The notes below the pieces were generated by a model, which was given only the letters and a program-made list of their open reading frames with translations, had not been told where the DNA came from and did not search any database. Positions 2,654-10,735 of a DNA stretch of 64,000 nucleotides are shown in pieces. How positions within the stretch are numbered: the first letter of the stretch is position 1; every line of letters starts with the position of its first letter. A program made the position numbers and the translations under genes. Location of the stretch: sequence record PV764938.1. One strand, 5' to 3'.

Positions 2654-3906
2654 TATTCGGGTCCACCGAATAGTAAAGTGATTCCCGGGATAGTACGACG
2701 AGGAGTCGCAAACAAGTGCGGGAATTTCTTCGTAACACGGTTTACCAGCTTTTCCACTGCGATTTCGTTCTCACGATGTACACGGTCGCGTCGAGCTAGT
2801 ACCTCGCGCCAGTGAGCCCCGTAGATGCTCCGTTGAATGCGGTTCTCATCGGATTCTTCAACGGACTCAATCGCATTAAGGGCCAGCTCAACTTGGATCG
2901 GACGTTTGCGTTCTTCAATCTGCTTGAGTTTGGATTCCGGCAACAGTTCGAGATTACCACGTGCCGTGATATTTGCTTCCTCGATGATAAGGTCTTCAAG
3001 TCCACTCTTGCAGTGGAGCACGATACTTGCGAGATGGTCGAACACGGTCACGTTCTGCGTATACACGCAAAGCCCACAAACGAACTCATCGGAATCCTTG
3101 TGATAAACGCGAGTCTCAGCGGAACCATGCGACCCCGCAATGGAACCGTATTTCTGTTTTGTAAGTGAGAACCGATATTTCTGACCGACGACGGAAATCT
3201 CCTGGCCGCTCATGAACATCTGCACGGTGTTCTCACCCGTAATGGAATCCAATAGCTTGGCAGATCGCTTCAACGCTTTCTTCTTGGACTTCTCTGGAGC
3301 TTTCGGCTTGCGACGATCCTCCCATTCCATTTCATCGTAGATCTCGCCGATAGTTGGCCGTGCGGGCCAGATCAACTTGAATTCAGAGAGGTTCGGAATA
3401 TTGGTTAGCGCGTTCCATTGCGCATGAATGCGATAACGGGATTCCAAGAAATGCCGCTTGCGTTCGAACATTTTGAGTCCATCATAGTAGACGACTCCAC
3501 GATGGTTGTGGCGAATGTTATTGCGGTAATACTCAATCCCGTTGAGAACTCCTCGTTCGTCCTCAACTAGAGAACCACAAATTTCACGGGCGATTTGCTT
3601 GGCATTGCCCGAATAGTGAACTCCATAGGCCAAACACAGGGCAACCGCATTTGGATCCGCAGTCTCCTGCCAATCCAAATAGAGACGCTCCAAACGTGCG
3701 CCATAATTGGACAAACGAGTGCCGTGATTCTGATCCTGCAGATCCATTTCGTGATCGAATGAATCCAACAGCTCAGTGATGTTTGGGCAGAAATATCGTC
3801 CCCACAGGTAGACGTCGGTTGGAATGTCGAAACACTCCAACGCACCGTCCAAGTAGTATTGAATATCCGGTGGAACTCGGCCACCTGTGATAACGATGTC
3901 CGTCAT
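2650..3906 (-). CDS. Uncharacterised 418-aa protein, partner of the GG-terminated protein
   Basis: Translationally coupled (TAATG) to 3906-4259; C-terminal half has SHGSAETRVY...CGLCVY...FDHLASIVLH...ANI. Confidence 0.6.
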   Translation of the reverse strand: MTDIVITGGRVPPDIQYYLDGALECFDIPTDVYLWGRYFCPNITELLDSFDHEMDLQDQNHGTRLSNYGARLERLYLDWQETADPNAVALCLAYGVHYSGNAKQIAREICGSLVEDERGVLNGIEYYRNNIRHNHRGVVYYDGLKMFERKRHFLESRYRIHAQWNALTNIPNLSEFKLIWPARPTIGEIYDEMEWEDRRKPKAPEKSKKKALKRSAKLLDSITGENTVQMFMSGQEISVVGQKYRFSLTKQKYGSIAGSHGSAETRVYHKDSDEFVCGLCVYTQNVTVFDHLASIVLHCKSGLEDLIIEEANITARGNLELLPESKLKQIEERKRPIQVELALNAIESVEESDENRIQRSIYGAHWREVLARRDRVHRENEIAVEKLVNRVTKKFPHLFATPRRTIPGITLLFGGPEY

Positions 3907-4259
3907 TAGCCGCCCTGGAACTGACGAACCGCAACCGCGTGGTTCGAAGCAATCTCTTTGGGATTTGTCGAAGCATGAAGCGTGTTGATGACCGTTCCGG
4001 TGATGCGCTTGATCAGGCCGACCTTGCCCTCCGTGAACAGCTTTTCGATGTCTTCATCTGGAACGTTGATCTGCCGGCCCTTCACGTCTTCGAGTTTGGT
4101 CACCTGAATCTGCTTCTTGGTGAAAGGCTCGATGATGAAGAAGCGGATGCCCTGATCCAGTTTCTTCTGAATGATCTCGGCCATTGCATCATCCTTGTCC
4201 TCTTCCCAGACGATGCTCAGGTCACCCATTTCATTCAACAGAGTAAGCGAACGTGTCAT
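3906..4259 (-). CDS. Small protein ending in Gly-Gly (candidate ubiquitin-like modifier)
   Basis: 117 aa, begins RSLTLLNEMGDLSIVW, ends AVRQFQGG-stop. Confidence 0.5.
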   Translation of the reverse strand: MTRSLTLLNEMGDLSIVWEEDKDDAMAEIIQKKLDQGIRFFIIEPFTKKQIQVTKLEDVKGRQINVPDEDIEKLFTEGKVGLIKRITGTVINTLHASTNPKEIASNHAVAVRQFQGG

Positions 4260-4840
4260 TAAAACCTCACTGAGTGATCGTAGTCGATATGAAGCTGACG
4301 GAAAACAACGTCAGTCTCCATGAACTTCTTTAGATTTCCCTTGCGCTTAGCTTTAAGGAAATCAAAAAGCAAGGTGCCAGGCGTCCGAAGTGTAAACGGC
4401 TTCTCGTGAATGAGAGTTTCCGTTTTCGGATCCCATACACCGAAACGTCCCTCACCAAAGTATTGGGTTCCGGTGATCTGATATTGTCCGCAGTGGTCAC
4501 CCTTGCCGTTACCACAGCTACTGAAGCCGAAGAACCGAGAAATGTCCCAGGCAAACAACTTGCCGTCGAACGGGCCTGTTGGATTGCGGTAGTTTGGGGT
4601 AATGAGATCCTGTGCAGCAATGCTCACAAAATCGATTTCGTTTTTGCGGGCCTGTGCCATCAGAATCCGGAACAGCATTCGGCGAGCATCGGCGAGTTCC
4701 ACGTTGAAATCGTAGCCAATCGGATCCCAGTCACGAGTTTTAGCCTTGTTGAGACCTGCAAAATACTCGATCGAAGCTACGACGATTTGTGGATCTGGGA
4801 GCAGGTTTCCCTGCAAGTCTGTGACGTTATTTTCCAGCAT
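4259..4840 (-). CDS. Hypothetical protein
   Basis: 193-aa ORF coupled to the downstream gene (TAATG); SSCGNGKGDHCG motif. Confidence 0.65.
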   Translation of the reverse strand: MLENNVTDLQGNLLPDPQIVVASIEYFAGLNKAKTRDWDPIGYDFNVELADARRMLFRILMAQARKNEIDFVSIAAQDLITPNYRNPTGPFDGKLFAWDISRFFGFSSCGNGKGDHCGQYQITGTQYFGEGRFGVWDPKTETLIHEKPFTLRTPGTLLFDFLKAKRKGNLKKFMETDVVFRQLHIDYDHSVRF

Positions 4841-5132
4841 ATTTGTCCAAGAAGTCCTTGTTATTATTCAGGCACAGGTCGGACCATTTCTTGGCCACGT
4901 CATCCCACTTTTGCTCGATAGCGATTTTCGAGAAGGACTCGCAAAGCCGATTCAACGACGCCCAGTCGCTTTTGTCGATCTCCATAAACATGGTCTGGTA
5001 TCGAATGTCCATGGTATATTCCTTGTAGAAGAACATACCAACAGGGAAGATTGCTGGGATAGCCACAATACAAGCGGCAACGAGAACGCCTGAGACCCAC
5101 GCGGGATATTTGGAAACTTGTTCAGTCATCAT
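4827..5132 (-). CDS. Hypothetical membrane protein
   Basis: Hydrophobic segment WVSGVLVAACIVAIPAIFPVGMFF. Confidence 0.6.
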   Translation of the reverse strand: MMTEQVSKYPAWVSGVLVAACIVAIPAIFPVGMFFYKEYTMDIRYQTMFMEIDKSDWASLNRLCESFSKIAIEQKWDDVAKKWSDLCLNNNKDFLDKYAGK

Positions 5133-5196
5133 GCTTCTTTCGGAAACGATTATGGCCCCACTATAACAGTGGGGCCAGTGTTTGCAAGCCTAAGTT

Positions 5197-5577
5197 TTAG
5201 GCCGCGACCGTCTGAATGTCCTTCTTCGCCTTGCGCTTGCGGAGAGCCTTGAGGCGCGGGTGCATGACCTTTTCCGACCGAACGTCGAAAGCTTCCTTGA
5301 TCGCAGCGGCGTCGCGCGGGTCCTGGAGATAGATCTTGTCCACGTAGACGACCTTGTTCTCGAACTCCCGCGAACGCGCCGACTTGCGCTTGGAGTCCTT
5401 GTGAACGTAGGTGTAGACCTTGTAGTAGCCGACCGCGTTCAGGGTGCACCAGGAGTTGACGTCCTCGGGAGCGATCTGATGCTGGCCGAACCAGAAACGG
5501 AAGGGGAAGCCGTAGAAGAAGGGGATTTCACCGTGCTTTTCCGACTGACGTCCGAAGTCCTGAAGCGTAGAAGTCAT
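5197..5577 (-). CDS. Hypothetical protein
   Basis: 126 aa, AGGAAGAG RBS, downstream of a sigma70-type promoter; basic C-terminus. Confidence 0.65.
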   Translation of the reverse strand: MTSTLQDFGRQSEKHGEIPFFYGFPFRFWFGQHQIAPEDVNSWCTLNAVGYYKVYTYVHKDSKRKSARSREFENKVVYVDKIYLQDPRDAAAIKEAFDVRSEKVMHPRLKALRKRKAKKDIQTVAA

Positions 5578-5627
5578 TTGCTCTTCCTTTCGATCTCTGT
5601 GCAGCGCCTGTTGCTGCTATGTCCTGA

Positions 5628-5659
5628 ATACTAACATAGGACAGACAAGTGTCAACCAG
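5628..5659 (-). promoter_or_regulatory. Sigma70-type early promoter
   Basis: CTGG-TTGACA-N16-TAGTAT on minus strand; shares CTGGTTGAC and TCCTATGTTA with the promoter at 11767-11798. Confidence 0.7.
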
Positions 5660-5764
5660 GTTTTTCAATTCTTTTCCACACAATTTTAGCACGACACCGT
5701 TTGAGATCATAACTCTACGATAGAGCTACGATTAAAGCTAAATACGTAAAACTGGGGGTACCAT

Positions 5765-6208
5765 ATGCGATCGTTTATAGGCAACCTTATTCGAGGCATT
5801 TTCTCAGCGGGTAAAGGACGACAAGTTCAGTTGGAGTGGATTACTCCAGAGGGAACCATCGGACTCTACTATGAGACTGAGGAAATTATGATCCAGCTGC
5901 AGGTTGCATCCTCCGCTGACATTGACCATTTCGAGCTGATTTCCGGTGCTCTGCCTGATTTCGTACAATTGCTCAGTGATGGACTGATCTTCGGTGAAGT
6001 CCCAGAAACTATTCCCGAAAATACCATCTACGAGTTCACACTTCGTGTCATCGACAAGGAAGAGAGATCGCAAGATCGTACCTTCAACTTGGATATTCGC
6101 AAGGTCGTCTCTGATATTCAATGGATCACGCCCGAAGGTAACATCGGAACTCTACGTTTGGGTCAAGCCGCATTTAATCATGTTGAAGCAGAGAGTACAT
6201 TGGTATGA
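5765..6208 (+). CDS. Ig-like (He_PIG-type) repeat virion protein, N-terminal part
   Basis: One complete unit (WITPEG...SGALP...FTLRVID...DRTFNLDI) plus the start of a second; TAAATA at 5739-5744. Confidence 0.7.
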   Translation: MRSFIGNLIRGIFSAGKGRQVQLEWITPEGTIGLYYETEEIMIQLQVASSADIDHFELISGALPDFVQLLSDGLIFGEVPETIPENTIYEFTLRVIDKEERSQDRTFNLDIRKVVSDIQWITPEGNIGTLRLGQAAFNHVEAESTLV

Positions 6209-7776
6209 CAGATCGAAGCAGAAAAGTTACCTATGGTGTTGTTAGTGGAGCTTTGCCTCCGGGTCTATCCTTGAATACTTCTACTGGTGGTGTTCGTGGC
6301 CTGATCAACCCTGCGGATTTCCTCGATGCACCAGTTTGGAATACCACTGGTGGCCTTCTGGGCCAATGGGAAGAGTTTGATGTAGTCGAACCGATTACCT
6401 TGAGTGCTTCTCTACAGGGAGACGCAACAAGTCTCGTCTACACCATCATGGAAGGTTACCGAAACAATCGCGGCCTACCCTGGGGTATTACTTTGGATCC
6501 CTACACGGGCGTACTTTCAGGAACTCTTTTGGAACTTCGTGATCCAACAAGCGCGAGCTGGACAGAAGAGGAAGAACCACAGTGGGTGACCACAGCCGGG
6601 AAACTCGCAACCTATGATGAACTCGCAGTCGTTTCGGGACTCAGCATTCAAGCAACGCCATACCAGACCCGTACTCTACGATATTCCATCGAGCGTGGAT
6701 CGCTACCTTGGGGACTGGAAATGTCCACGACCGACGGAGCGTTCAGCGGTACAATTCGTCGACTGAAGGTTCTAGGCGGAGTCCCCATTATTGAACCGAA
6801 GCCACGTTGGTTGTCTCCGGCTTTTGTGGGAACTGCGGACGAACTCAAATCGGCCAGTTTTACAATCCTTGCCCAGCCACGCCTTGGTAATAAGGTTACC
6901 TATTTTATTCGTGGTGGTGGGCTTCCTTGGGGATTGTCGTTGAACCCTGCGACTGGTGTCATTTCGGGTACCGCAGCTCTGTTGAAAGCCAATGATGGTT
7001 TCTCATGGCCACCAGTACAGTCCCCGGTCTGGGAAACGCCTTCGGGTTCTATCCTCTCGACTGAGGAACTATCCGTAATTGACTTGCCCAACGTGTTCGA
7101 GGCAACCGCTTACCAAACACGTACTCTTCGCTATGAAGTTACCGGTGGCCGCCTACCGTGGGGTCTAGAGCTATCGAACGGTGGAACCCTAAGTGGTACC
7201 ATCACTCAGCTACAGTTACTCGAAGGTGTCCACGTCATTGAACCAAAGCCAACTTGGGGCACATCATCCGGAAACATTGGCGTATTCAACGAGCTAGAAG
7301 CTGGTGTAAATGTTCAGCTATCTGCCACAGCAAATCGTGGAACAACAATCCGTTATAATATTCGAAGCGGTGGTCTGCCTTGGGGCCTTTATTTGGATCC
7401 AAACACCGGTGCAATCACGGGAACCCTTGCCCAAATCAAACCCGTCGATACAGCTATTCCAGCGAGTAATCCTCCGACGTTCACAGAAGCTCCAGGAACG
7501 ACGATTATCACAACGACAGTCGGTGGAACGCCCTCATATGTGATTGGCGTTTCTGTGCAATCTGGACGCACTTTGAGTGCAATCGAATTGGTTCCTCAAC
7601 CAAAGTTCCGCTCGGGCCTACCATTTGGTCTTCAGCTAAATAGCGCAACAGGCGCAATTACTGGTACCGTTGCCGCTGGTGCAAGCGTTGGAACATATGA
7701 TGTAATTTTCCGAGCCATCGATAGTGTAGGCGCCATTTCCAATCTATCAGCTCATATTGTAATACAAGGTGCATAA
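6205..7776 (+). CDS. Ig-like (He_PIG-type) tandem-repeat scaffold protein, tail/baseplate-associated
   Basis: Seven GxLP(P/W/F)G(L/I)xLxxxxGx(I/L)(S/T)G-type repeats of about 75-85 aa. Confidence 0.75.
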   Translation: MTDRSRKVTYGVVSGALPPGLSLNTSTGGVRGLINPADFLDAPVWNTTGGLLGQWEEFDVVEPITLSASLQGDATSLVYTIMEGYRNNRGLPWGITLDPYTGVLSGTLLELRDPTSASWTEEEEPQWVTTAGKLATYDELAVVSGLSIQATPYQTRTLRYSIERGSLPWGLEMSTTDGAFSGTIRRLKVLGGVPIIEPKPRWLSPAFVGTADELKSASFTILAQPRLGNKVTYFIRGGGLPWGLSLNPATGVISGTAALLKANDGFSWPPVQSPVWETPSGSILSTEELSVIDLPNVFEATAYQTRTLRYEVTGGRLPWGLELSNGGTLSGTITQLQLLEGVHVIEPKPTWGTSSGNIGVFNELEAGVNVQLSATANRGTTIRYNIRSGGLPWGLYLDPNTGAITGTLAQIKPVDTAIPASNPPTFTEAPGTTIITTTVGGTPSYVIGVSVQSGRTLSAIELVPQPKFRSGLPFGLQLNSATGAITGTVAAGASVGTYDVIFRAIDSVGAISNLSAHIVIQGA

Positions 7777-8993
7777 TGACGACATTCAATTTCAAAGTAC
7801 GAGCCGTCGATAACAAGGGAGCTTTCGCAGATCGCGATTTCTCAATGGATGTCAGAAACACCGCCTACGACAAATTCGTAATGACTACGACTGAAGGTTA
7901 TATCGTAACAAGCGTTGACGGTCTGAATTGGCAATACCGTGCGCAGTACCTGAACGCCAATACCCTATTTGGTGATGTCGTATGGGGTCCTGGATTTTGG
8001 TTTGCTACAAAAACATCTACCACATATATTCGGAGCATCGACGGTATCAACTGGACTGAGCATTCATATCCAACAGGATATGCAATGTATCCAACCAATA
8101 TAGCATCGAACTATACGAATTCTCCTACTTTGATTCCGCGACCGTCAGTCGGTGATGGAAAGTTGATGATGCTGTTGGAAGTCGATACCGCTACCACAGC
8201 AGATCAGGCAAGGCATCTCGCATATACTACTGACGGGTTGACCTGGACTGTTGTACCGACGCCAGTCATCAAGAATACCAGTTATATCTATCGTGCTTGT
8301 TCTAACCAAGCATTGTTTGCGAATGATCGTTGGTATGTAAACCATTACGCGCAATCAAGTTGGCCGAATGCAGATGCCGCAATGAGATGGATTGCGAAGG
8401 ATTTCACTGGTGATTGGACTAACGTTCCACGTGCAAATGGCGCCACAGGTTTTGGTGGTGGCCATAATTTGCGTTTCGTAAACGGCACGTTCTTTACGTG
8501 GTCAAACTCAAACATTTACATGATGAGTGCAGATGGTATTAACTGGACCAGCTATGCAAGACCTACAACCAATCAATCCTATTATTACTTGCCCTGCATG
8601 TTGTACTGCAATGGCAAGATCGTTGCGTATCCTGACTCTTATAACTTTACTAGCGTTCAGGCTACCGCTGGTACGTGGGATAAAGTTCACACCAGTCTTG
8701 ATGGTATAACTTGGTCAACTGTTACGGTGCCTGCCTTGCCATTTACACATCCAAATATCGTAAACTATTCGACCCTATACAATACGGCTTCAGCTAACGG
8801 TCGTATCAGTGGAACCTACTACGGTGGTGTGATTTTGTTTGGCTCTAGAATCGTCAATAACAATGTCGCATATGGTGGATTGCTGACTAGTACAGATGGT
8901 GGACTCACATTTACTCGTAACGCAATTCCGTCGGTCGGTCTAGCCAGTGCCGTTGCTGTTAATGGTTTGGCATCTATGGGTCAGAGCGTTTAA
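7776..8993 (+). CDS. Asp-box beta-propeller protein (putative adhesin)
   Basis: Repeated (T/S)xDGxxW boxes (TSVDGLNW, RSIDGINW, YTTDGLTW, MSADGINW, TSLDGITW); N-terminal FNFKVRAVD...DRDFSMDV. Confidence 0.7.
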   Translation: MTTFNFKVRAVDNKGAFADRDFSMDVRNTAYDKFVMTTTEGYIVTSVDGLNWQYRAQYLNANTLFGDVVWGPGFWFATKTSTTYIRSIDGINWTEHSYPTGYAMYPTNIASNYTNSPTLIPRPSVGDGKLMMLLEVDTATTADQARHLAYTTDGLTWTVVPTPVIKNTSYIYRACSNQALFANDRWYVNHYAQSSWPNADAAMRWIAKDFTGDWTNVPRANGATGFGGGHNLRFVNGTFFTWSNSNIYMMSADGINWTSYARPTTNQSYYYLPCMLYCNGKIVAYPDSYNFTSVQATAGTWDKVHTSLDGITWSTVTVPALPFTHPNIVNYSTLYNTASANGRISGTYYGGVILFGSRIVNNNVAYGGLLTSTDGGLTFTRNAIPSVGLASAVAVNGLASMGQSV

Positions 8994-9003
8994 GGAGAAT
9001 ACA

Positions 9004-10221
9004 ATGGTAGACTTTAATTTCACAGTCCGCGCAACTGACGATATTGGTGCTTACACCGAACGCGACTTTTCCATTACCGTTGAAAATACACTAGTCAACC
9101 AGTTCATGGCGACAACGACGGCTGGACATATTTTGACCTCGGTGGATGGATACAATTGGGTACAACAAAACAACGTATATCCGGTAATCAACAACAATGC
9201 GTTTGGTCAAGTAATCAATGCGAATGGTTTCTGGTTAGTTGTTACGGGTCCAACAACTTACATCCGATCTATTGATTCGATTTCTTGGACCCAACATACT
9301 TTCCCGACCAATTACAATTTCGCACTCAATGGTGGTTCCTATTTGCCAACGTCCAAGCATCTGACTTATGGAGACGGTAAGATTGCATGTGTGTTGTTTG
9401 ATACAACCGCTTCAAACCAAGTTGCATTCTTTACAACGACTGATGGCCTATCATGGACACAAGGCGGAAACATTCCGCATCCGACTGGAACAAACCATTG
9501 GGTTTCGATTAGCAATGTAGAATACGGCAATGGTGTTTGGCTTTGCTCTCGTCGGGTGGCCACCGACTACATCAATACAGTCACGGAGATGGGTTATAAG
9601 AGTATTGATGGTGGAGCAACATGGACAGCGATGCCGTTCCCGACAGGAAATCAATCCACACTAGGATATGTCCGATTCACATTCATGAATGGTCTTTGGT
9701 ATGGGGCAGGCTTCAATAATGGTTACCTCTTGAGTAACGATTCAACAAACTGGTCCTATTATCCATATCCGACAACAAACTCATCAACTATGTTGTTCGT
9801 GAATGTAACTTATGCGAACGGAAAAATCTTCTGCTTCTCCGAATCCAGGGCAGTTATAACACTGGCCAATAACGGCGGTGACTGGCTAGCAACGTGGCAA
9901 AGCGTGGATGGTTTGACATGGTCCAAGGTTACTATGAGCTTTGCGGAAAATTCAGGAATATATTTCTCAAACTCCGCTCCCACTACTACATCGTACACCA
10001 GTTATACCACGAGTACAACAGGATCATCGCAAGCTTACAACTACCTGGCGTCGATCTTTCATAATGGTCTGTATGTGATGACCGCTAGAATTTCACCGGG
10101 ATCCGCAAATTTCAATAACGTTCTGGTAAGTGCAGACGGCGTAACTTGGCAACGAACTAATGTTGCAGCAAATTTGGGTATCACGGGAGTGGCAGCACTC
10201 CGATTGGATGACACAGTTTGA
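9004..10221 (+). CDS. Asp-box beta-propeller protein (paralog of 7776-8993)
   Basis: AAGGAG RBS before ATG 9004; seven Asp-box-like repeats; N-terminal FNFTVRATD...ERDFSITV. Confidence 0.7.
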   Translation: MVDFNFTVRATDDIGAYTERDFSITVENTLVNQFMATTTAGHILTSVDGYNWVQQNNVYPVINNNAFGQVINANGFWLVVTGPTTYIRSIDSISWTQHTFPTNYNFALNGGSYLPTSKHLTYGDGKIACVLFDTTASNQVAFFTTTDGLSWTQGGNIPHPTGTNHWVSISNVEYGNGVWLCSRRVATDYINTVTEMGYKSIDGGATWTAMPFPTGNQSTLGYVRFTFMNGLWYGAGFNNGYLLSNDSTNWSYYPYPTTNSSTMLFVNVTYANGKIFCFSESRAVITLANNGGDWLATWQSVDGLTWSKVTMSFAENSGIYFSNSAPTTTSYTSYTTSTTGSSQAYNYLASIFHNGLYVMTARISPGSANFNNVLVSADGVTWQRTNVAANLGITGVAALRLDDTV

Positions 10222-10226
10222 GGTAG

Positions 10227-10252
10227 AAAAAGCGGGCAACGCCCGCTTTTTT
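10227..10252. terminator. Bidirectional intrinsic terminator
   Basis: AAAAAGCGGGC-AAC-GCCCGCTTTTTT between convergent genes. Confidence 0.85.
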
Positions 10253-10267
10253 GTTTCTGTTGTCGGA

Positions 10268-10735
10268 TTACGCCGAGAGGATGAGATCCTGGTACTTGTC
10301 AGCGAACTGCTCGAAGCTCGGGGTGTTCAATACATCCAACTTAATCCGGCGCTTGGAGAGAAGATCGCGGAGTACAGCAACCACAACACCTGCTTCCGGC
10401 AACGTCGGCGGAACATCGCGCCAGTCTGCCTTCAGTTCCTTGTTGTTGAAGATTTCGCCAACCGCATCACGAGCAACTTCATATTCTGCATCACCCTTCT
10501 TGGGGCAAGTGAAGTTTTCGAGCATGTAGGAGATAATCTCTTCGAAGCTTACGACCTTACCGTCGTAATTTTCAACAATCGCACTGTGCAGACGAATGAC
10601 GTGCTTGATCTTGTCTGCATAAGTCTGCTTGAGAACCGCAGCAACAGCCGGCGAAGTAGCCGCAGCAACAATCGTTGCGCCAGCAAGTGCGCGACGGAGA
10701 AAGTTACGACGGGAAATGTTGCCGATGTTGCTCAT
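10268..10735 (-). CDS. Protein with twin-arginine (Tat) signal peptide
   Basis: MSNIGNISRRNFLRRALAGATIVAAATSPAVAA: SRRxFL motif, hydrophobic h-region, AxA cleavage site; GGAG RBS. Confidence 0.7.
   Translation of the reverse strand: MSNIGNISRRNFLRRALAGATIVAAATSPAVAAVLKQTYADKIKHVIRLHSAIVENYDGKVVSFEEIISYMLENFTCPKKGDAEYEVARDAVGEIFNNKELKADWRDVPPTLPEAGVVVAVLRDLLSKRRIKLDVLNTPSFEQFADKYQDLILSA

Follow-up and report, generated by a model that had tools for sequence, protein, structure and literature searches.

How the products of an operon that combines Ig-type repeats with beta-propellers might be joined to one another is the question raised by a locus of Sinorhizobium phage Phosso, a jumbo phage with a genome of 469 kb. 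In the window, the whole stretch of 64,000 nucleotides analysed here, positions 5765–10221 hold one operon of four open reading frames, all on the plus strand: ORF1 (5765–6208, 147 aa), ORF2 (6205–7776, 523 aa), which encodes a He_PIG Ig-repeat protein, and two Asp-box propeller genes, propeller 1 (7776–8993, 405 aa) and propeller 2 (9004–10221, 405 aa, with an ATG start that is also the start of the GenBank CDS). The operon is closed by a terminator-like hairpin on the same strand (10226–10252, 12-bp stem and T run), and the next gene lies on the opposite strand. Proteins of these kinds are currently annotated as hypothetical. Our answer, to which we give about an even chance, is that the four genes encode a virion appendage joined by rebuilding a He_PIG Ig-type domain from pieces on different polypeptides.

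ORF2 matched Pfam He_PIG (PF05345) in seven stretches at 133.1 bits, above the gathering score of 24 bits that serves as the membership cut-off, and 77 relatives were found. A PDB search with its sequence returned no relative, and its AlphaFold2 (AF2) model, of moderate confidence (mean pLDDT 72), matched only cadherin and Ig arrays in Foldseek. The initial annotation had claimed that six Ig units lack their last two strands, and the profile matches bore this out. The six comprise a lone C-C'-E half unit at the start of ORF2 (6205–6330, profile positions 33–64 of 96) and five internal units (6331–7467), and their matches all ended at profile position 64–66 of 96. When completeness is taken to mean coverage of the full profile, last two strands included, all six fell short, and the complete unit of ORF1 (reaching position 95) and the last unit of ORF2 (reaching 85) covered it or nearly so. 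In addition, the units of ORF2 were spaced at 73–81 residues, where arrays made up of complete units have a median spacing of 89, and a hairpin HMM found no match in the internal linkers of ORF2, where its best score was negative. The terminal complete unit of ORF2 (7468–7773, profile positions 8–85 of 96) ends with an F-G hairpin at about 7690–7767, for which AF2 predicted strands at residues 496–506 and 511–521.

As had also been noted, LPWG is present in five hairpin-less units; the sixth, the lone half, has no Trp at the LPxG position. Trp occupied this position in 93 of 117 internal hairpin-less units, in none of 35 lone halves and in 8 of 188 ordinary complete units, and an aromatic residue did so in 102 of the 117 internal units (lone halves, 0/35). 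Judged by sequence, the five internal units are a separate, Trp-bearing subtype. Lone C-C'-E halves begin 35–36 ORF2-like proteins, and the complete-type profile scored better for 31 of 36 of them.

ORF1 consists of an N-terminal peptide of approximately 22 aa devoid of an Ig signature (5765–5830), one complete He_PIG unit (5831–6109) with its own F-G hairpin (about 6023–6103), and a lone A-B half unit at the C-terminal end (6110–6205). The complete unit aligned to profile positions 43–95 of 96 at 18.9 bits, ORF1 alone scoring 17.5–18.9 bits, below the 24-bit cut-off, and a hairpin HMM matched residues 87–113. Both cis hairpins on which the initial annotation relied were thus present, but ORF1 does not finish with its hairpin as had been stated, since it continues with the half unit. 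Near-identical homologues of ORF1 are 147–148 aa long, nine aligned ORF1-like proteins all end at one shared point, and every ORF1-like protein stops a few residues past the lone A-B half, including those of loci L004 and L008, in which the ORF2-like gene is not adjacent. The lone A-B half was not distinguishable by profile from internal A-B halves (3/8). The GenBank start of ORF1 is later, at 5831; GGGGG is located 8–12 nt upstream of the ATG at 5765, and an N-terminal peptide of like length and character was found in all ORF1-like proteins. Its role may possibly be that of an attachment end.

In Phosso, ORF1 and ORF2 overlap by their stop and start codons, and the unit sequence runs on across both. 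The initial annotation had missed this division of the first hairpin-less unit between two ORFs. Among related jumbo-phage contigs, 12 gene pairs showed the A-B | C split at the identical point in varying layouts, namely overlap, a stop in the same frame (L005), or one or two propeller genes lying in between (L004 and L008); since the split is constant even where the genes are not adjacent, it is not that of a broken gene. In the 13th module (L135), which has no ORF1-like gene, the unit was unsplit, hairpin-less and without Trp, and was followed by a propeller gene.

The counterpart of the missing strands was found at the start of the propellers, as the initial annotation had recognized: residues 2–29 of propeller 1 (7779–7862) and of propeller 2 (9007–9090) scored 59 and 57.6 bits, respectively, with an HMM trained on propeller N-termini alone. 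The search for hairpin-first ORFs proposed in that annotation yielded a total of three across the whole Phosso genome, at 57–61 bits with the next ORF at 9 bits, and 35 propeller proteins in all, in every one of which the hairpin starts at residues 2–3. In these 35 proteins the median identity was 68% in the hairpin versus 26% in the propeller body; seven of the first 29 positions, the start Met included, were invariant (share of the commonest residue, 1.00), and the conservation covered residues on both strand faces. In He_PIG arrays the same HMM also picked out 52 ordinary F-G hairpins in cis, in the right register and at up to 38.8 bits, most of the cis matches listed lying 5–14 residues past the preceding half. 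Pfam He_PIG gave no hit on the isolated 45-residue propeller N-termini. The HMM matches indirectly support the assignment of the propeller N-terminus as an orphaned F-G hairpin from a He_PIG domain. In the AF2 monomer of propeller 1, residues 1–29 had pLDDT <50 and no secondary structure beside a confident propeller, on which the peptide was not packed.

The propeller bodies, that of propeller 1 starting at residue ~33, contain six (propeller 1) and seven (propeller 2) Asp-box-like motifs; the AF2 model of propeller 1 had a pTM of 0.81, and propeller 2 is 31% identical to propeller 1 (tblastn within the window). Foldseek matched the fold to sortilin Vps10p, Ycf48, BamB and GH74 with a probability of 1.00 each, albeit at TM values of only 0.3–0.5, and to the Atu_ph07 homologue at a TM of 0.74. 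Searched against the PDB, the family profile detected only sialidase chains (E about 1e-6 over 114 residues), a similarity at the level of blades. Pfam assigned no family, whether BNR, BNR_2, DUF6242_C or any other, to either Phosso protein at E up to 1; in relatives, precomputed hits to PF25852 or PF13088 were present, though some were weak or faint. On motifs and model, both proteins qualify as Asp-box (BNR-type) beta-propellers, in agreement with the initial annotation. Receptor binding or host recognition by these propellers would be a guess, and their description as interchangeable was not borne out, as no protein family other than this one was found behind the orphan hairpin.

Scaffold and propeller genes co-occurred in every locus examined, and a gap matching the hairpin was present in the neighbouring gene products in 13 of 13 modules. 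Most loci have a single propeller gene per scaffold pair, two being found in Phosso, L003, L006, L004 and L008. By our own tally, the number of non-aromatic hairpin-less units equalled that of propeller genes in 11 of the 13 modules; module A of Phosso and L008 each have two propeller genes and one such unit. Meanwhile, three homologues of the Phosso proteins, gp239, gp240 and gp241 of phage Atu_ph07, are all virion proteins, detected by mass spectrometry of the virion proteome with three, two and six peptides, respectively (Table S5, PMC6102473). gp239 (15.8 kDa) was most abundant in the low-mass gel band 11 (PMC6102473), and is therefore a separate polypeptide.

Since each protein carries loose fragments of one Ig-type domain, the pieces probably lock together. 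In the most likely reading, strands A-B at the end of ORF1, C-C'-E at the start of ORF2 and F-G at the start of each propeller would fold into one sandwich domain, the propeller hairpin completing the split unit in trans to give a three-protein junction. The rebuilt domain would tie an anchor (ORF1, with its N-terminal peptide and one complete Ig unit) to a stalk (ORF2, with its five shortened Trp-type units and terminal complete unit) and to a binding head, the Asp-box propeller. The two adjacent propellers of Phosso may be alternative occupants of the junction, or one of them may use a second site. The Trp-type internal units would serve mainly as spacers, the aromatic residue compensating for the hairpin that they lack, although the Trp might just as well contribute to a docking surface. 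We infer this docking, and likewise the number of sockets, the location in the virion and the propeller ligand. The idea of the initial annotation that the hairpins dock into incomplete Ig units thus gained indirect support from the complementary pieces, their conservation, gene co-occurrence and the virion homologues, but its array form did not. That one Ig-type domain made from three virion proteins forms a natural three-way split branching joint, perhaps with further stalk units filled in trans so that one scaffold carries several propellers, we regard as plausible at somewhat less than an even chance.

An array, as originally envisaged, would make every hairpin-less unit of the scaffold an open socket (about six in Phosso), with several propellers side by side in a multivalent brush. 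We consider this unlikely, although the same two strands are missing from all six units, a hairpin that fits many different sockets would be tightly constrained in keeping with its near-invariance, and five loci do encode two propellers per scaffold. There is also a precedent in the rope protein of podophage A1002, whose 11 docking sites bind fibre dimers by sheet augmentation (PMC13730344). However, the figure of about six sockets was not supported, as the five internal units are the aromatic subtype and most scaffold pairs come with one propeller gene; the hairpin-less units, 4–8 per module, do not track the one or two propeller genes. An array also assigns no role to the conserved split of the first unit, and the division of that unit between ORF1 and ORF2 points instead to one three-piece junction.

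It is likewise improbable, to a similar degree, that the hairpin-less and half units are self-sufficient or pair with each other, the propeller N-terminus binding another virion component or its own propeller, so that the linkage of the genes would reflect shared function only. AF2 modelled the unit cores of ORF2 at pLDDT 80–90 without any hairpin, and phage fibres and spikes often carry a conserved N-terminal adaptor through which they attach to baseplate or adaptor proteins. Against this, the peptide shares homology, in the proper register, with the F-G hairpins of He_PIG units, the matching gap recurs in the neighbouring products of all modules, AF2 leaves the peptide unpacked on the propeller, and this reading would offer no explanation for the two orphan half units at the ends of proteins.

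Far less probable still is that a frameshift, through error or programmed recoding, divides a single gene into ORF1 and ORF2, and that the N-terminal hairpins are only scars of cassette recombination between Ig-propeller fusion genes: although the unit is continuous across stop-start overlaps in Phosso and several relatives, and the ORFs of L005 share a frame with a stop between them, the split is identical where propeller genes separate the pair, the differing layouts fit no single recoding mechanism, no slippery sequence was apparent on our own reading of the Phosso overlap, gp239 occurs mainly as a small protein, and conservation across 35 proteins would not peak in scars.

Bacterial pili are the textbook case of assembly by trans completion of an incomplete Ig fold. 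In chaperone-usher pili (Pap, Fim), an Ig-like fold is completed through donor-strand complementation and exchange by the N-terminal extension of another polypeptide, resulting in a very stable non-covalent joint. Phosso resembles these pili in having an Ig-like fold with C-terminal strand material missing and a candidate N-terminal donor on another polypeptide. The pili, however, polymerize head to tail by donation of one strand (G) between like subunits with the aid of a periplasmic chaperone and an usher, whereas in Phosso two strands (F-G) would come from an unrelated propeller protein and not from an Ig subunit, the acceptor is in turn divided over two proteins, and the infected cell's cytoplasm would be the site of assembly. 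Neither chaperone nor usher genes were found in 10 loci, judged by their called genes and precomputed Pfam hits, or in the Phosso annotation.

Ig-like repeats are also displayed on virions by tailed-phage decoration and fibre domains such as T4 Hoc, which are complete within a single chain and presumably serve weak surface adhesion; we know of no trans-completed domain described for them. In SpyTag/SpyCatcher and its three-part version, an engineered Ig-like domain in two or three pieces reassembles spontaneously and is locked by an isopeptide bond; that system is man-made and covalent, and nothing suggests a covalent bond in Phosso. By sequence, ORF2 and the ORF1 unit belong with the He_PIG/cadherin-like arrays of bacterial surfaces (PF05345), and the propeller hairpin has its match in the F-G strands of the family. 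Bacterial arrays, however, have complete units at ~89-residue spacing, and this phage group alone showed the shortened Trp-type units, terminal half units and orphan hairpin.

Assembly of a phage appendage by sheet sharing, as proposed here, has a parallel in the chain-like fibres of podophages GP4, VP1 and A1002, which have a split nozzle and in which a rope protein docks fibre subunits via augmented beta-sheets (PMC13730344). A podophage with a rope protein also rebuilds a canonical domain from two proteins by strand complementation (PMC13730344). These fibres differ in that fibre dimers sit on a dock domain, not on an Ig domain cut in three, and in belonging to podophages instead of jumbo myophages. 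No relation to the solved rope and fibre proteins was detected in the PDB sequence search and Foldseek search with ORF2 or in the propeller profile search.

In the searched literature, we found no description of trans completion for an Ig domain of a phage virion, nor of a domain distributed over three proteins. Should the junction prove real, it would explain the assembly, from small proteins, of the 'hairy' appendages of jumbo phages like Atu_ph07, which are poorly understood, and would offer protein science a natural example of a three-piece split domain. It would also provide an annotation signature, namely one protein with a half unit at its end, another that opens with the next half and a third that is hairpin-first. 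A scan of the whole Phosso genome detected two lone A-B halves, two lone C-C'-E halves and three hairpin-first genes, located in two modules.

The region 5700-10300 of the window was 100% identical to the 469,473-bp genome of Sinorhizobium phage Phosso (PV764938.1), whose host is S. meliloti; record base 248,001 corresponds to window base 1. According to the ORF list, four genes lie here on the + strand, namely ORF1 (5765-6208, 147 aa), ORF2 (6205-7776, 523 aa), and the propeller genes prop1 (7776-8993, 405 aa) and prop2 (9004-10221, 405 aa), and a strong terminator-like hairpin on the same strand (10226-10252) stands at the end of the set. All four were labeled "hypothetical protein" in GenBank, and among other phage records a relative of the propeller protein occurred only in that of Agrobacterium phage Atu_ph07 (28% identity). 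The GenBank start of ORF1, a TTG at 5831, is probably too late, since GGGGG is placed 8-12 nt 5' of the ATG at 5765, the two near-identical homologs to which the word filter confined a search with ORF1 are 147-148 aa in length, and a comparable N-terminal peptide is common to all ORF1-like proteins.

The Ig-type He_PIG unit was divided into X (strands A-B), Y (strands C-C'-E with the LPxG and G..SGT turns), and H (the F-G hairpin), and the units were sorted by position-based classes and HMMs. ORF1 consists of the N-terminal peptide, one X-Y-H unit, and a lone X; ORF2 of a lone Y, five X-Y units, and a final X-Y-H unit; and each propeller protein of an H followed by the propeller. The Pfam He_PIG match ended at profile position 64-66 of 96 for ORF2's lone Y and each of its five X-Y units, at 95 of 96 in the ORF1 unit, and at 85 in the last ORF2 unit. 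The spacing from one LPxG turn of ORF2 to the next was 73-81 residues, versus a median of 89 in arrays of complete units, and a hairpin HMM gave no signal on the internal linkers of ORF2. The ORFs, match ends, spacing, and hairpin HMM together bore out the observation of the initial annotation that Ig repeats devoid of the hairpin occur with propeller proteins starting with it. The linkers after the internal units (6331-7467) alternate between an acidic kind with a Ser-Trp pair and a kind that has a Leu-rich stretch and ends in Glu-Pro-Lys-Pro, which suggests a stalk with a two-unit super-repeat.

An HMM derived from 21 propeller N-termini alone (29 columns) matched 52 internal hairpins in He_PIG arrays of phages and bacteria with scores of at least 10 bits (maximum 38.8), and most of those listed lie 5-14 residues past the end of Y, namely in the register of strands F-G. 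These matches mark the N-terminus of the propeller proteins as a genuine He_PIG hairpin; Pfam itself returned no He_PIG match for the isolated 45-residue propeller N-termini. A chunk-by-chunk HMM scan of the whole Phosso genome yielded three ORFs at 57-61 bits, namely the two propeller genes of the window and one more at record 439,995-441,122, and therefore the presence of four propeller paralogs, considered from the four places matched by prop1 in the search, was rejected. The next best and highest non-propeller score, 9 bits, fell in an annotated S8 family peptidase of 1,287 aa (L137:26888-27370, a Phosso segment; record ~75,888-76,370), whose He_PIG-like units bear a weak resemblance to ORF1 and ORF2. 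When an eight-residue hairpin segment was back-translated and searched for as a pattern in viral_contigs (4 matches, 1 real) and metagenome_contigs (at least 120 matches), nearly all listed matches were due to chance or unrelated families, and the loci L011 and L016 were the only real ones among the matches listed.

Among 35 distinct propeller proteins beginning with the hairpin, the median identity was 68% in residues 2-29 and 26% in the propeller body. Seven of the first 29 columns, start Met included, were invariant, and in most other hairpin columns the commonest residue had a share of at least 0.8, on both strand faces. In the AF2 monomer model of prop1, the hairpin was the least confident segment (pLDDT <50) and had no secondary structure, as would be expected if the segment folded only on a partner.

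The propeller itself begins near residue 33 of this model (pTM 0.81), and 6 and 7 Asp-box-like motifs were found in prop1 and prop2, respectively. Foldseek matched prop1 to sortilin Vps10p, Ycf48, BamB, kelch, and GH74 proteins (TM 0.3-0.5); within the viral library, the Atu_ph07 homolog ranked first (TM 0.74), followed by DUF6242 or BNR propellers within proteins named tail fiber or structural protein. The family profile matched sialidase chains of the PDB (E ~1e-6 over 114 residues); an active sialidase was considered as the identity of the propeller, and the likeness was at blade level only. Cellular organisms have a very large set of family members, with 35,978 representatives (E ≤0.001). 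Of the top 150, the only ones whose match began at profile position 1 were the 21 short proteins (343-415 aa). The 14 short proteins that were new all bore the hairpin, at residue 2-3 and with 55-64 bits, and none of the 129 giant proteins had it (maximum 9 bits by the hairpin HMM).

Each module, comprising ORF1-like anchor, ORF2-like stalk, and propeller genes, was found to carry a single lone X, a single lone Y, and one or more lone H pieces, X-Y being unsplit in the contig class of L135. In the seven-strand Ig sandwich, strand B pairs with E and C with F, and A adjoins G; therefore, each pair of the pieces X, Y, and H would share sheet hydrogen bonds. Because the orphan pieces would pair in this manner, we prefer a model in which the three would rebuild one He_PIG domain and constitute a three-protein junction. 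The L135 class, which has no ORF1-like gene, supports the assignment of the first hairpin-less unit as the socket: its ORF2-like protein begins with an unsplit X-Y having neither H nor Trp, and a gene for a hairpin-first propeller comes next.

The inner residue of the LPxG turn was tallied by unit class in 35 ORF2-like proteins. Trp occupied this position in 93 of 117 internal hairpin-less units (8 others had Phe and 1 Tyr), in 6 of 35 terminal complete units (Phe in 10), and in 8 of 188 units of ordinary complete arrays (Phe in 7, Tyr in 9); none of the 35 lone Y pieces had Trp or another aromatic residue. By this measure the internal units without hairpin belong to a subtype of their own. 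The complete-type Y profile outscored the own-neighbor profile for the lone Y in 31 of 36 proteins; the same comparison for the lone X did not discriminate (3 of 8). It is reasonable to suppose that the aromatic residue stands in for the absent hairpin and that the internal units form the stalk. In a small sample of related members, the count of hairpin-less non-aromatic units matched that of propeller genes in 11 of 13 modules; in the other two, the window module of Phosso and L008, one such unit goes with two propellers.

Completion in trans centered on the split junction is, in our estimate, about an even prospect. The initial annotation had instead taken the Ig-repeat scaffold for an array of some six sockets; the missing hairpins of its internal units would suit such an array, their aromatic subtype argues against it, and we regard it as unlikely. 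Binding of the hairpin at some other place, against which the F-G register of the hairpin speaks, is similarly unlikely.

The junction model includes a point missed by the initial annotation: the lone X plus a few residues is the C-terminus of ORF1 and the lone Y is the start of ORF2, and the first hairpin-less unit is accordingly divided between two proteins, which could initially be mistaken for a frameshifted gene. The same cut was present in Atu_ph07, in which the annotated start of gp240 (the ORF2 homolog) is too far downstream, the ORF opening at an ATG that overlaps the stop of gp239, the ORF1 homolog (L002:6907-6982; MF403008 record ~187,408-187,483). It recurred in the metagenomic jumbo-phage contigs L003, L005, L006, L007, L133, and L134 (twice), in the second module of Phosso, and in L004 and L008, even though one or two propeller genes there separate the X-ending from the Y-starting gene. 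The layouts range from stop-start overlap through a same-frame stop (L005) to full separation, and hence one recoding mechanism cannot fit all. TGA is the ORF1 stop in both Phosso and Atu_ph07; a "suppressor" tRNA with anticodon TCA is tabulated for Atu_ph07 (supplement of PMC6102473). In Phosso, a tRNA with anticodon CTA (labeled tRNA-Pyl) is annotated at record 446,731-446,806, and in-frame readthrough of the TGA would not arrive at ORF2. In the Atu_ph07 virion proteome, gp239 (15.8 kDa) was most abundant in the low-mass gel band 11, and gp240 was detected in bands 5-6 (PMC6102473, Table S5). A single broken or recoded ORF1-ORF2 gene, very improbable in view of the recurrent cut, also in separated genes, the varied layouts, and the low-mass band of gp239, was rejected. 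As five lines of evidence speak against a frameshift, ORF1 and ORF2 were treated as two intact genes, each product carrying half of one unit.

Purified Atu_ph07 particles yielded 3, 2, and 6 unique peptides of gp239, gp240, and the propeller gp241, respectively, and bear tail fibers as well as "hairy" whiskers, mainly capsid-associated in appearance (PMC6102473). Donor-strand complementation is the principle shared with chaperone-usher pili. The present modules, however, are not a member of that system, since they lack chaperone and usher, would donate two strands rather than one from a protein other than an Ig subunit, and have a split acceptor. The nearest functional precedents within phages are the podophages GP4, VP1, and A1002, in which a rope protein docks up to 11 fiber dimers via sheet augmentation, and, in A1002, a split nozzle is rebuilt from two proteins via strand complementation (PMC13730344). 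Foldseek and PDB profile searches found no relation to these rope, fiber, or nozzle proteins by sequence or fold, and the literature on donor strands or strand complementation in phage fibers and on He_PIG in phages contained no description of this arrangement that we found. The best explanation at hand, based on anatomy, conservation, synteny, and proteomics, is that an incomplete Ig unit would receive the hairpin in trans.

The window module of Phosso is flanked by capsid and terminase genes and by a block with Mtd_N-type tail fiber genes. A second complete module lies outside the window on the - strand (L144:995-4481; record 439,995-443,481), placed after a 248-aa protein without family match and comprising an ORF1-like protein of 154 aa, an ORF2-like protein of 380 aa with three Trp-type units, and one hairpin-first propeller of 375 aa. 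The L135 module is preceded by a DUF2793 protein matching tail-fiber PHROGs. The metagenomic contig L134 contains two complete triads of anchor, stalk, and propeller in tandem (3570-9339), with a divergent upstream gene for a 962-aa protein that opens with complete He_PIG units, and L133 has an upstream gene for a similar protein (665 aa). The anchor can itself be a long fiber, as suggested by the 1,308-aa ORF1-like protein of L004 (1864-5790), which has ~13 complete units and likewise terminates in a lone A-B half. Past the terminal complete unit, some ORF2-like proteins (P0033, P0054, P0060) have an additional C-terminal domain of lectin type, either Laminin_G_3 (as in P0033) or F5/8 type C, also called discoidin (as in P0054), which is compatible with a putative adhesive role. 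Elsewhere in the Phosso record (48,338-68,978 and 195,696-209,363), three giant genes of ~3,160, 3,690, and 4,555 codons were observed, the last annotated as a virion structural protein and adjoining baseplate wedge genes.
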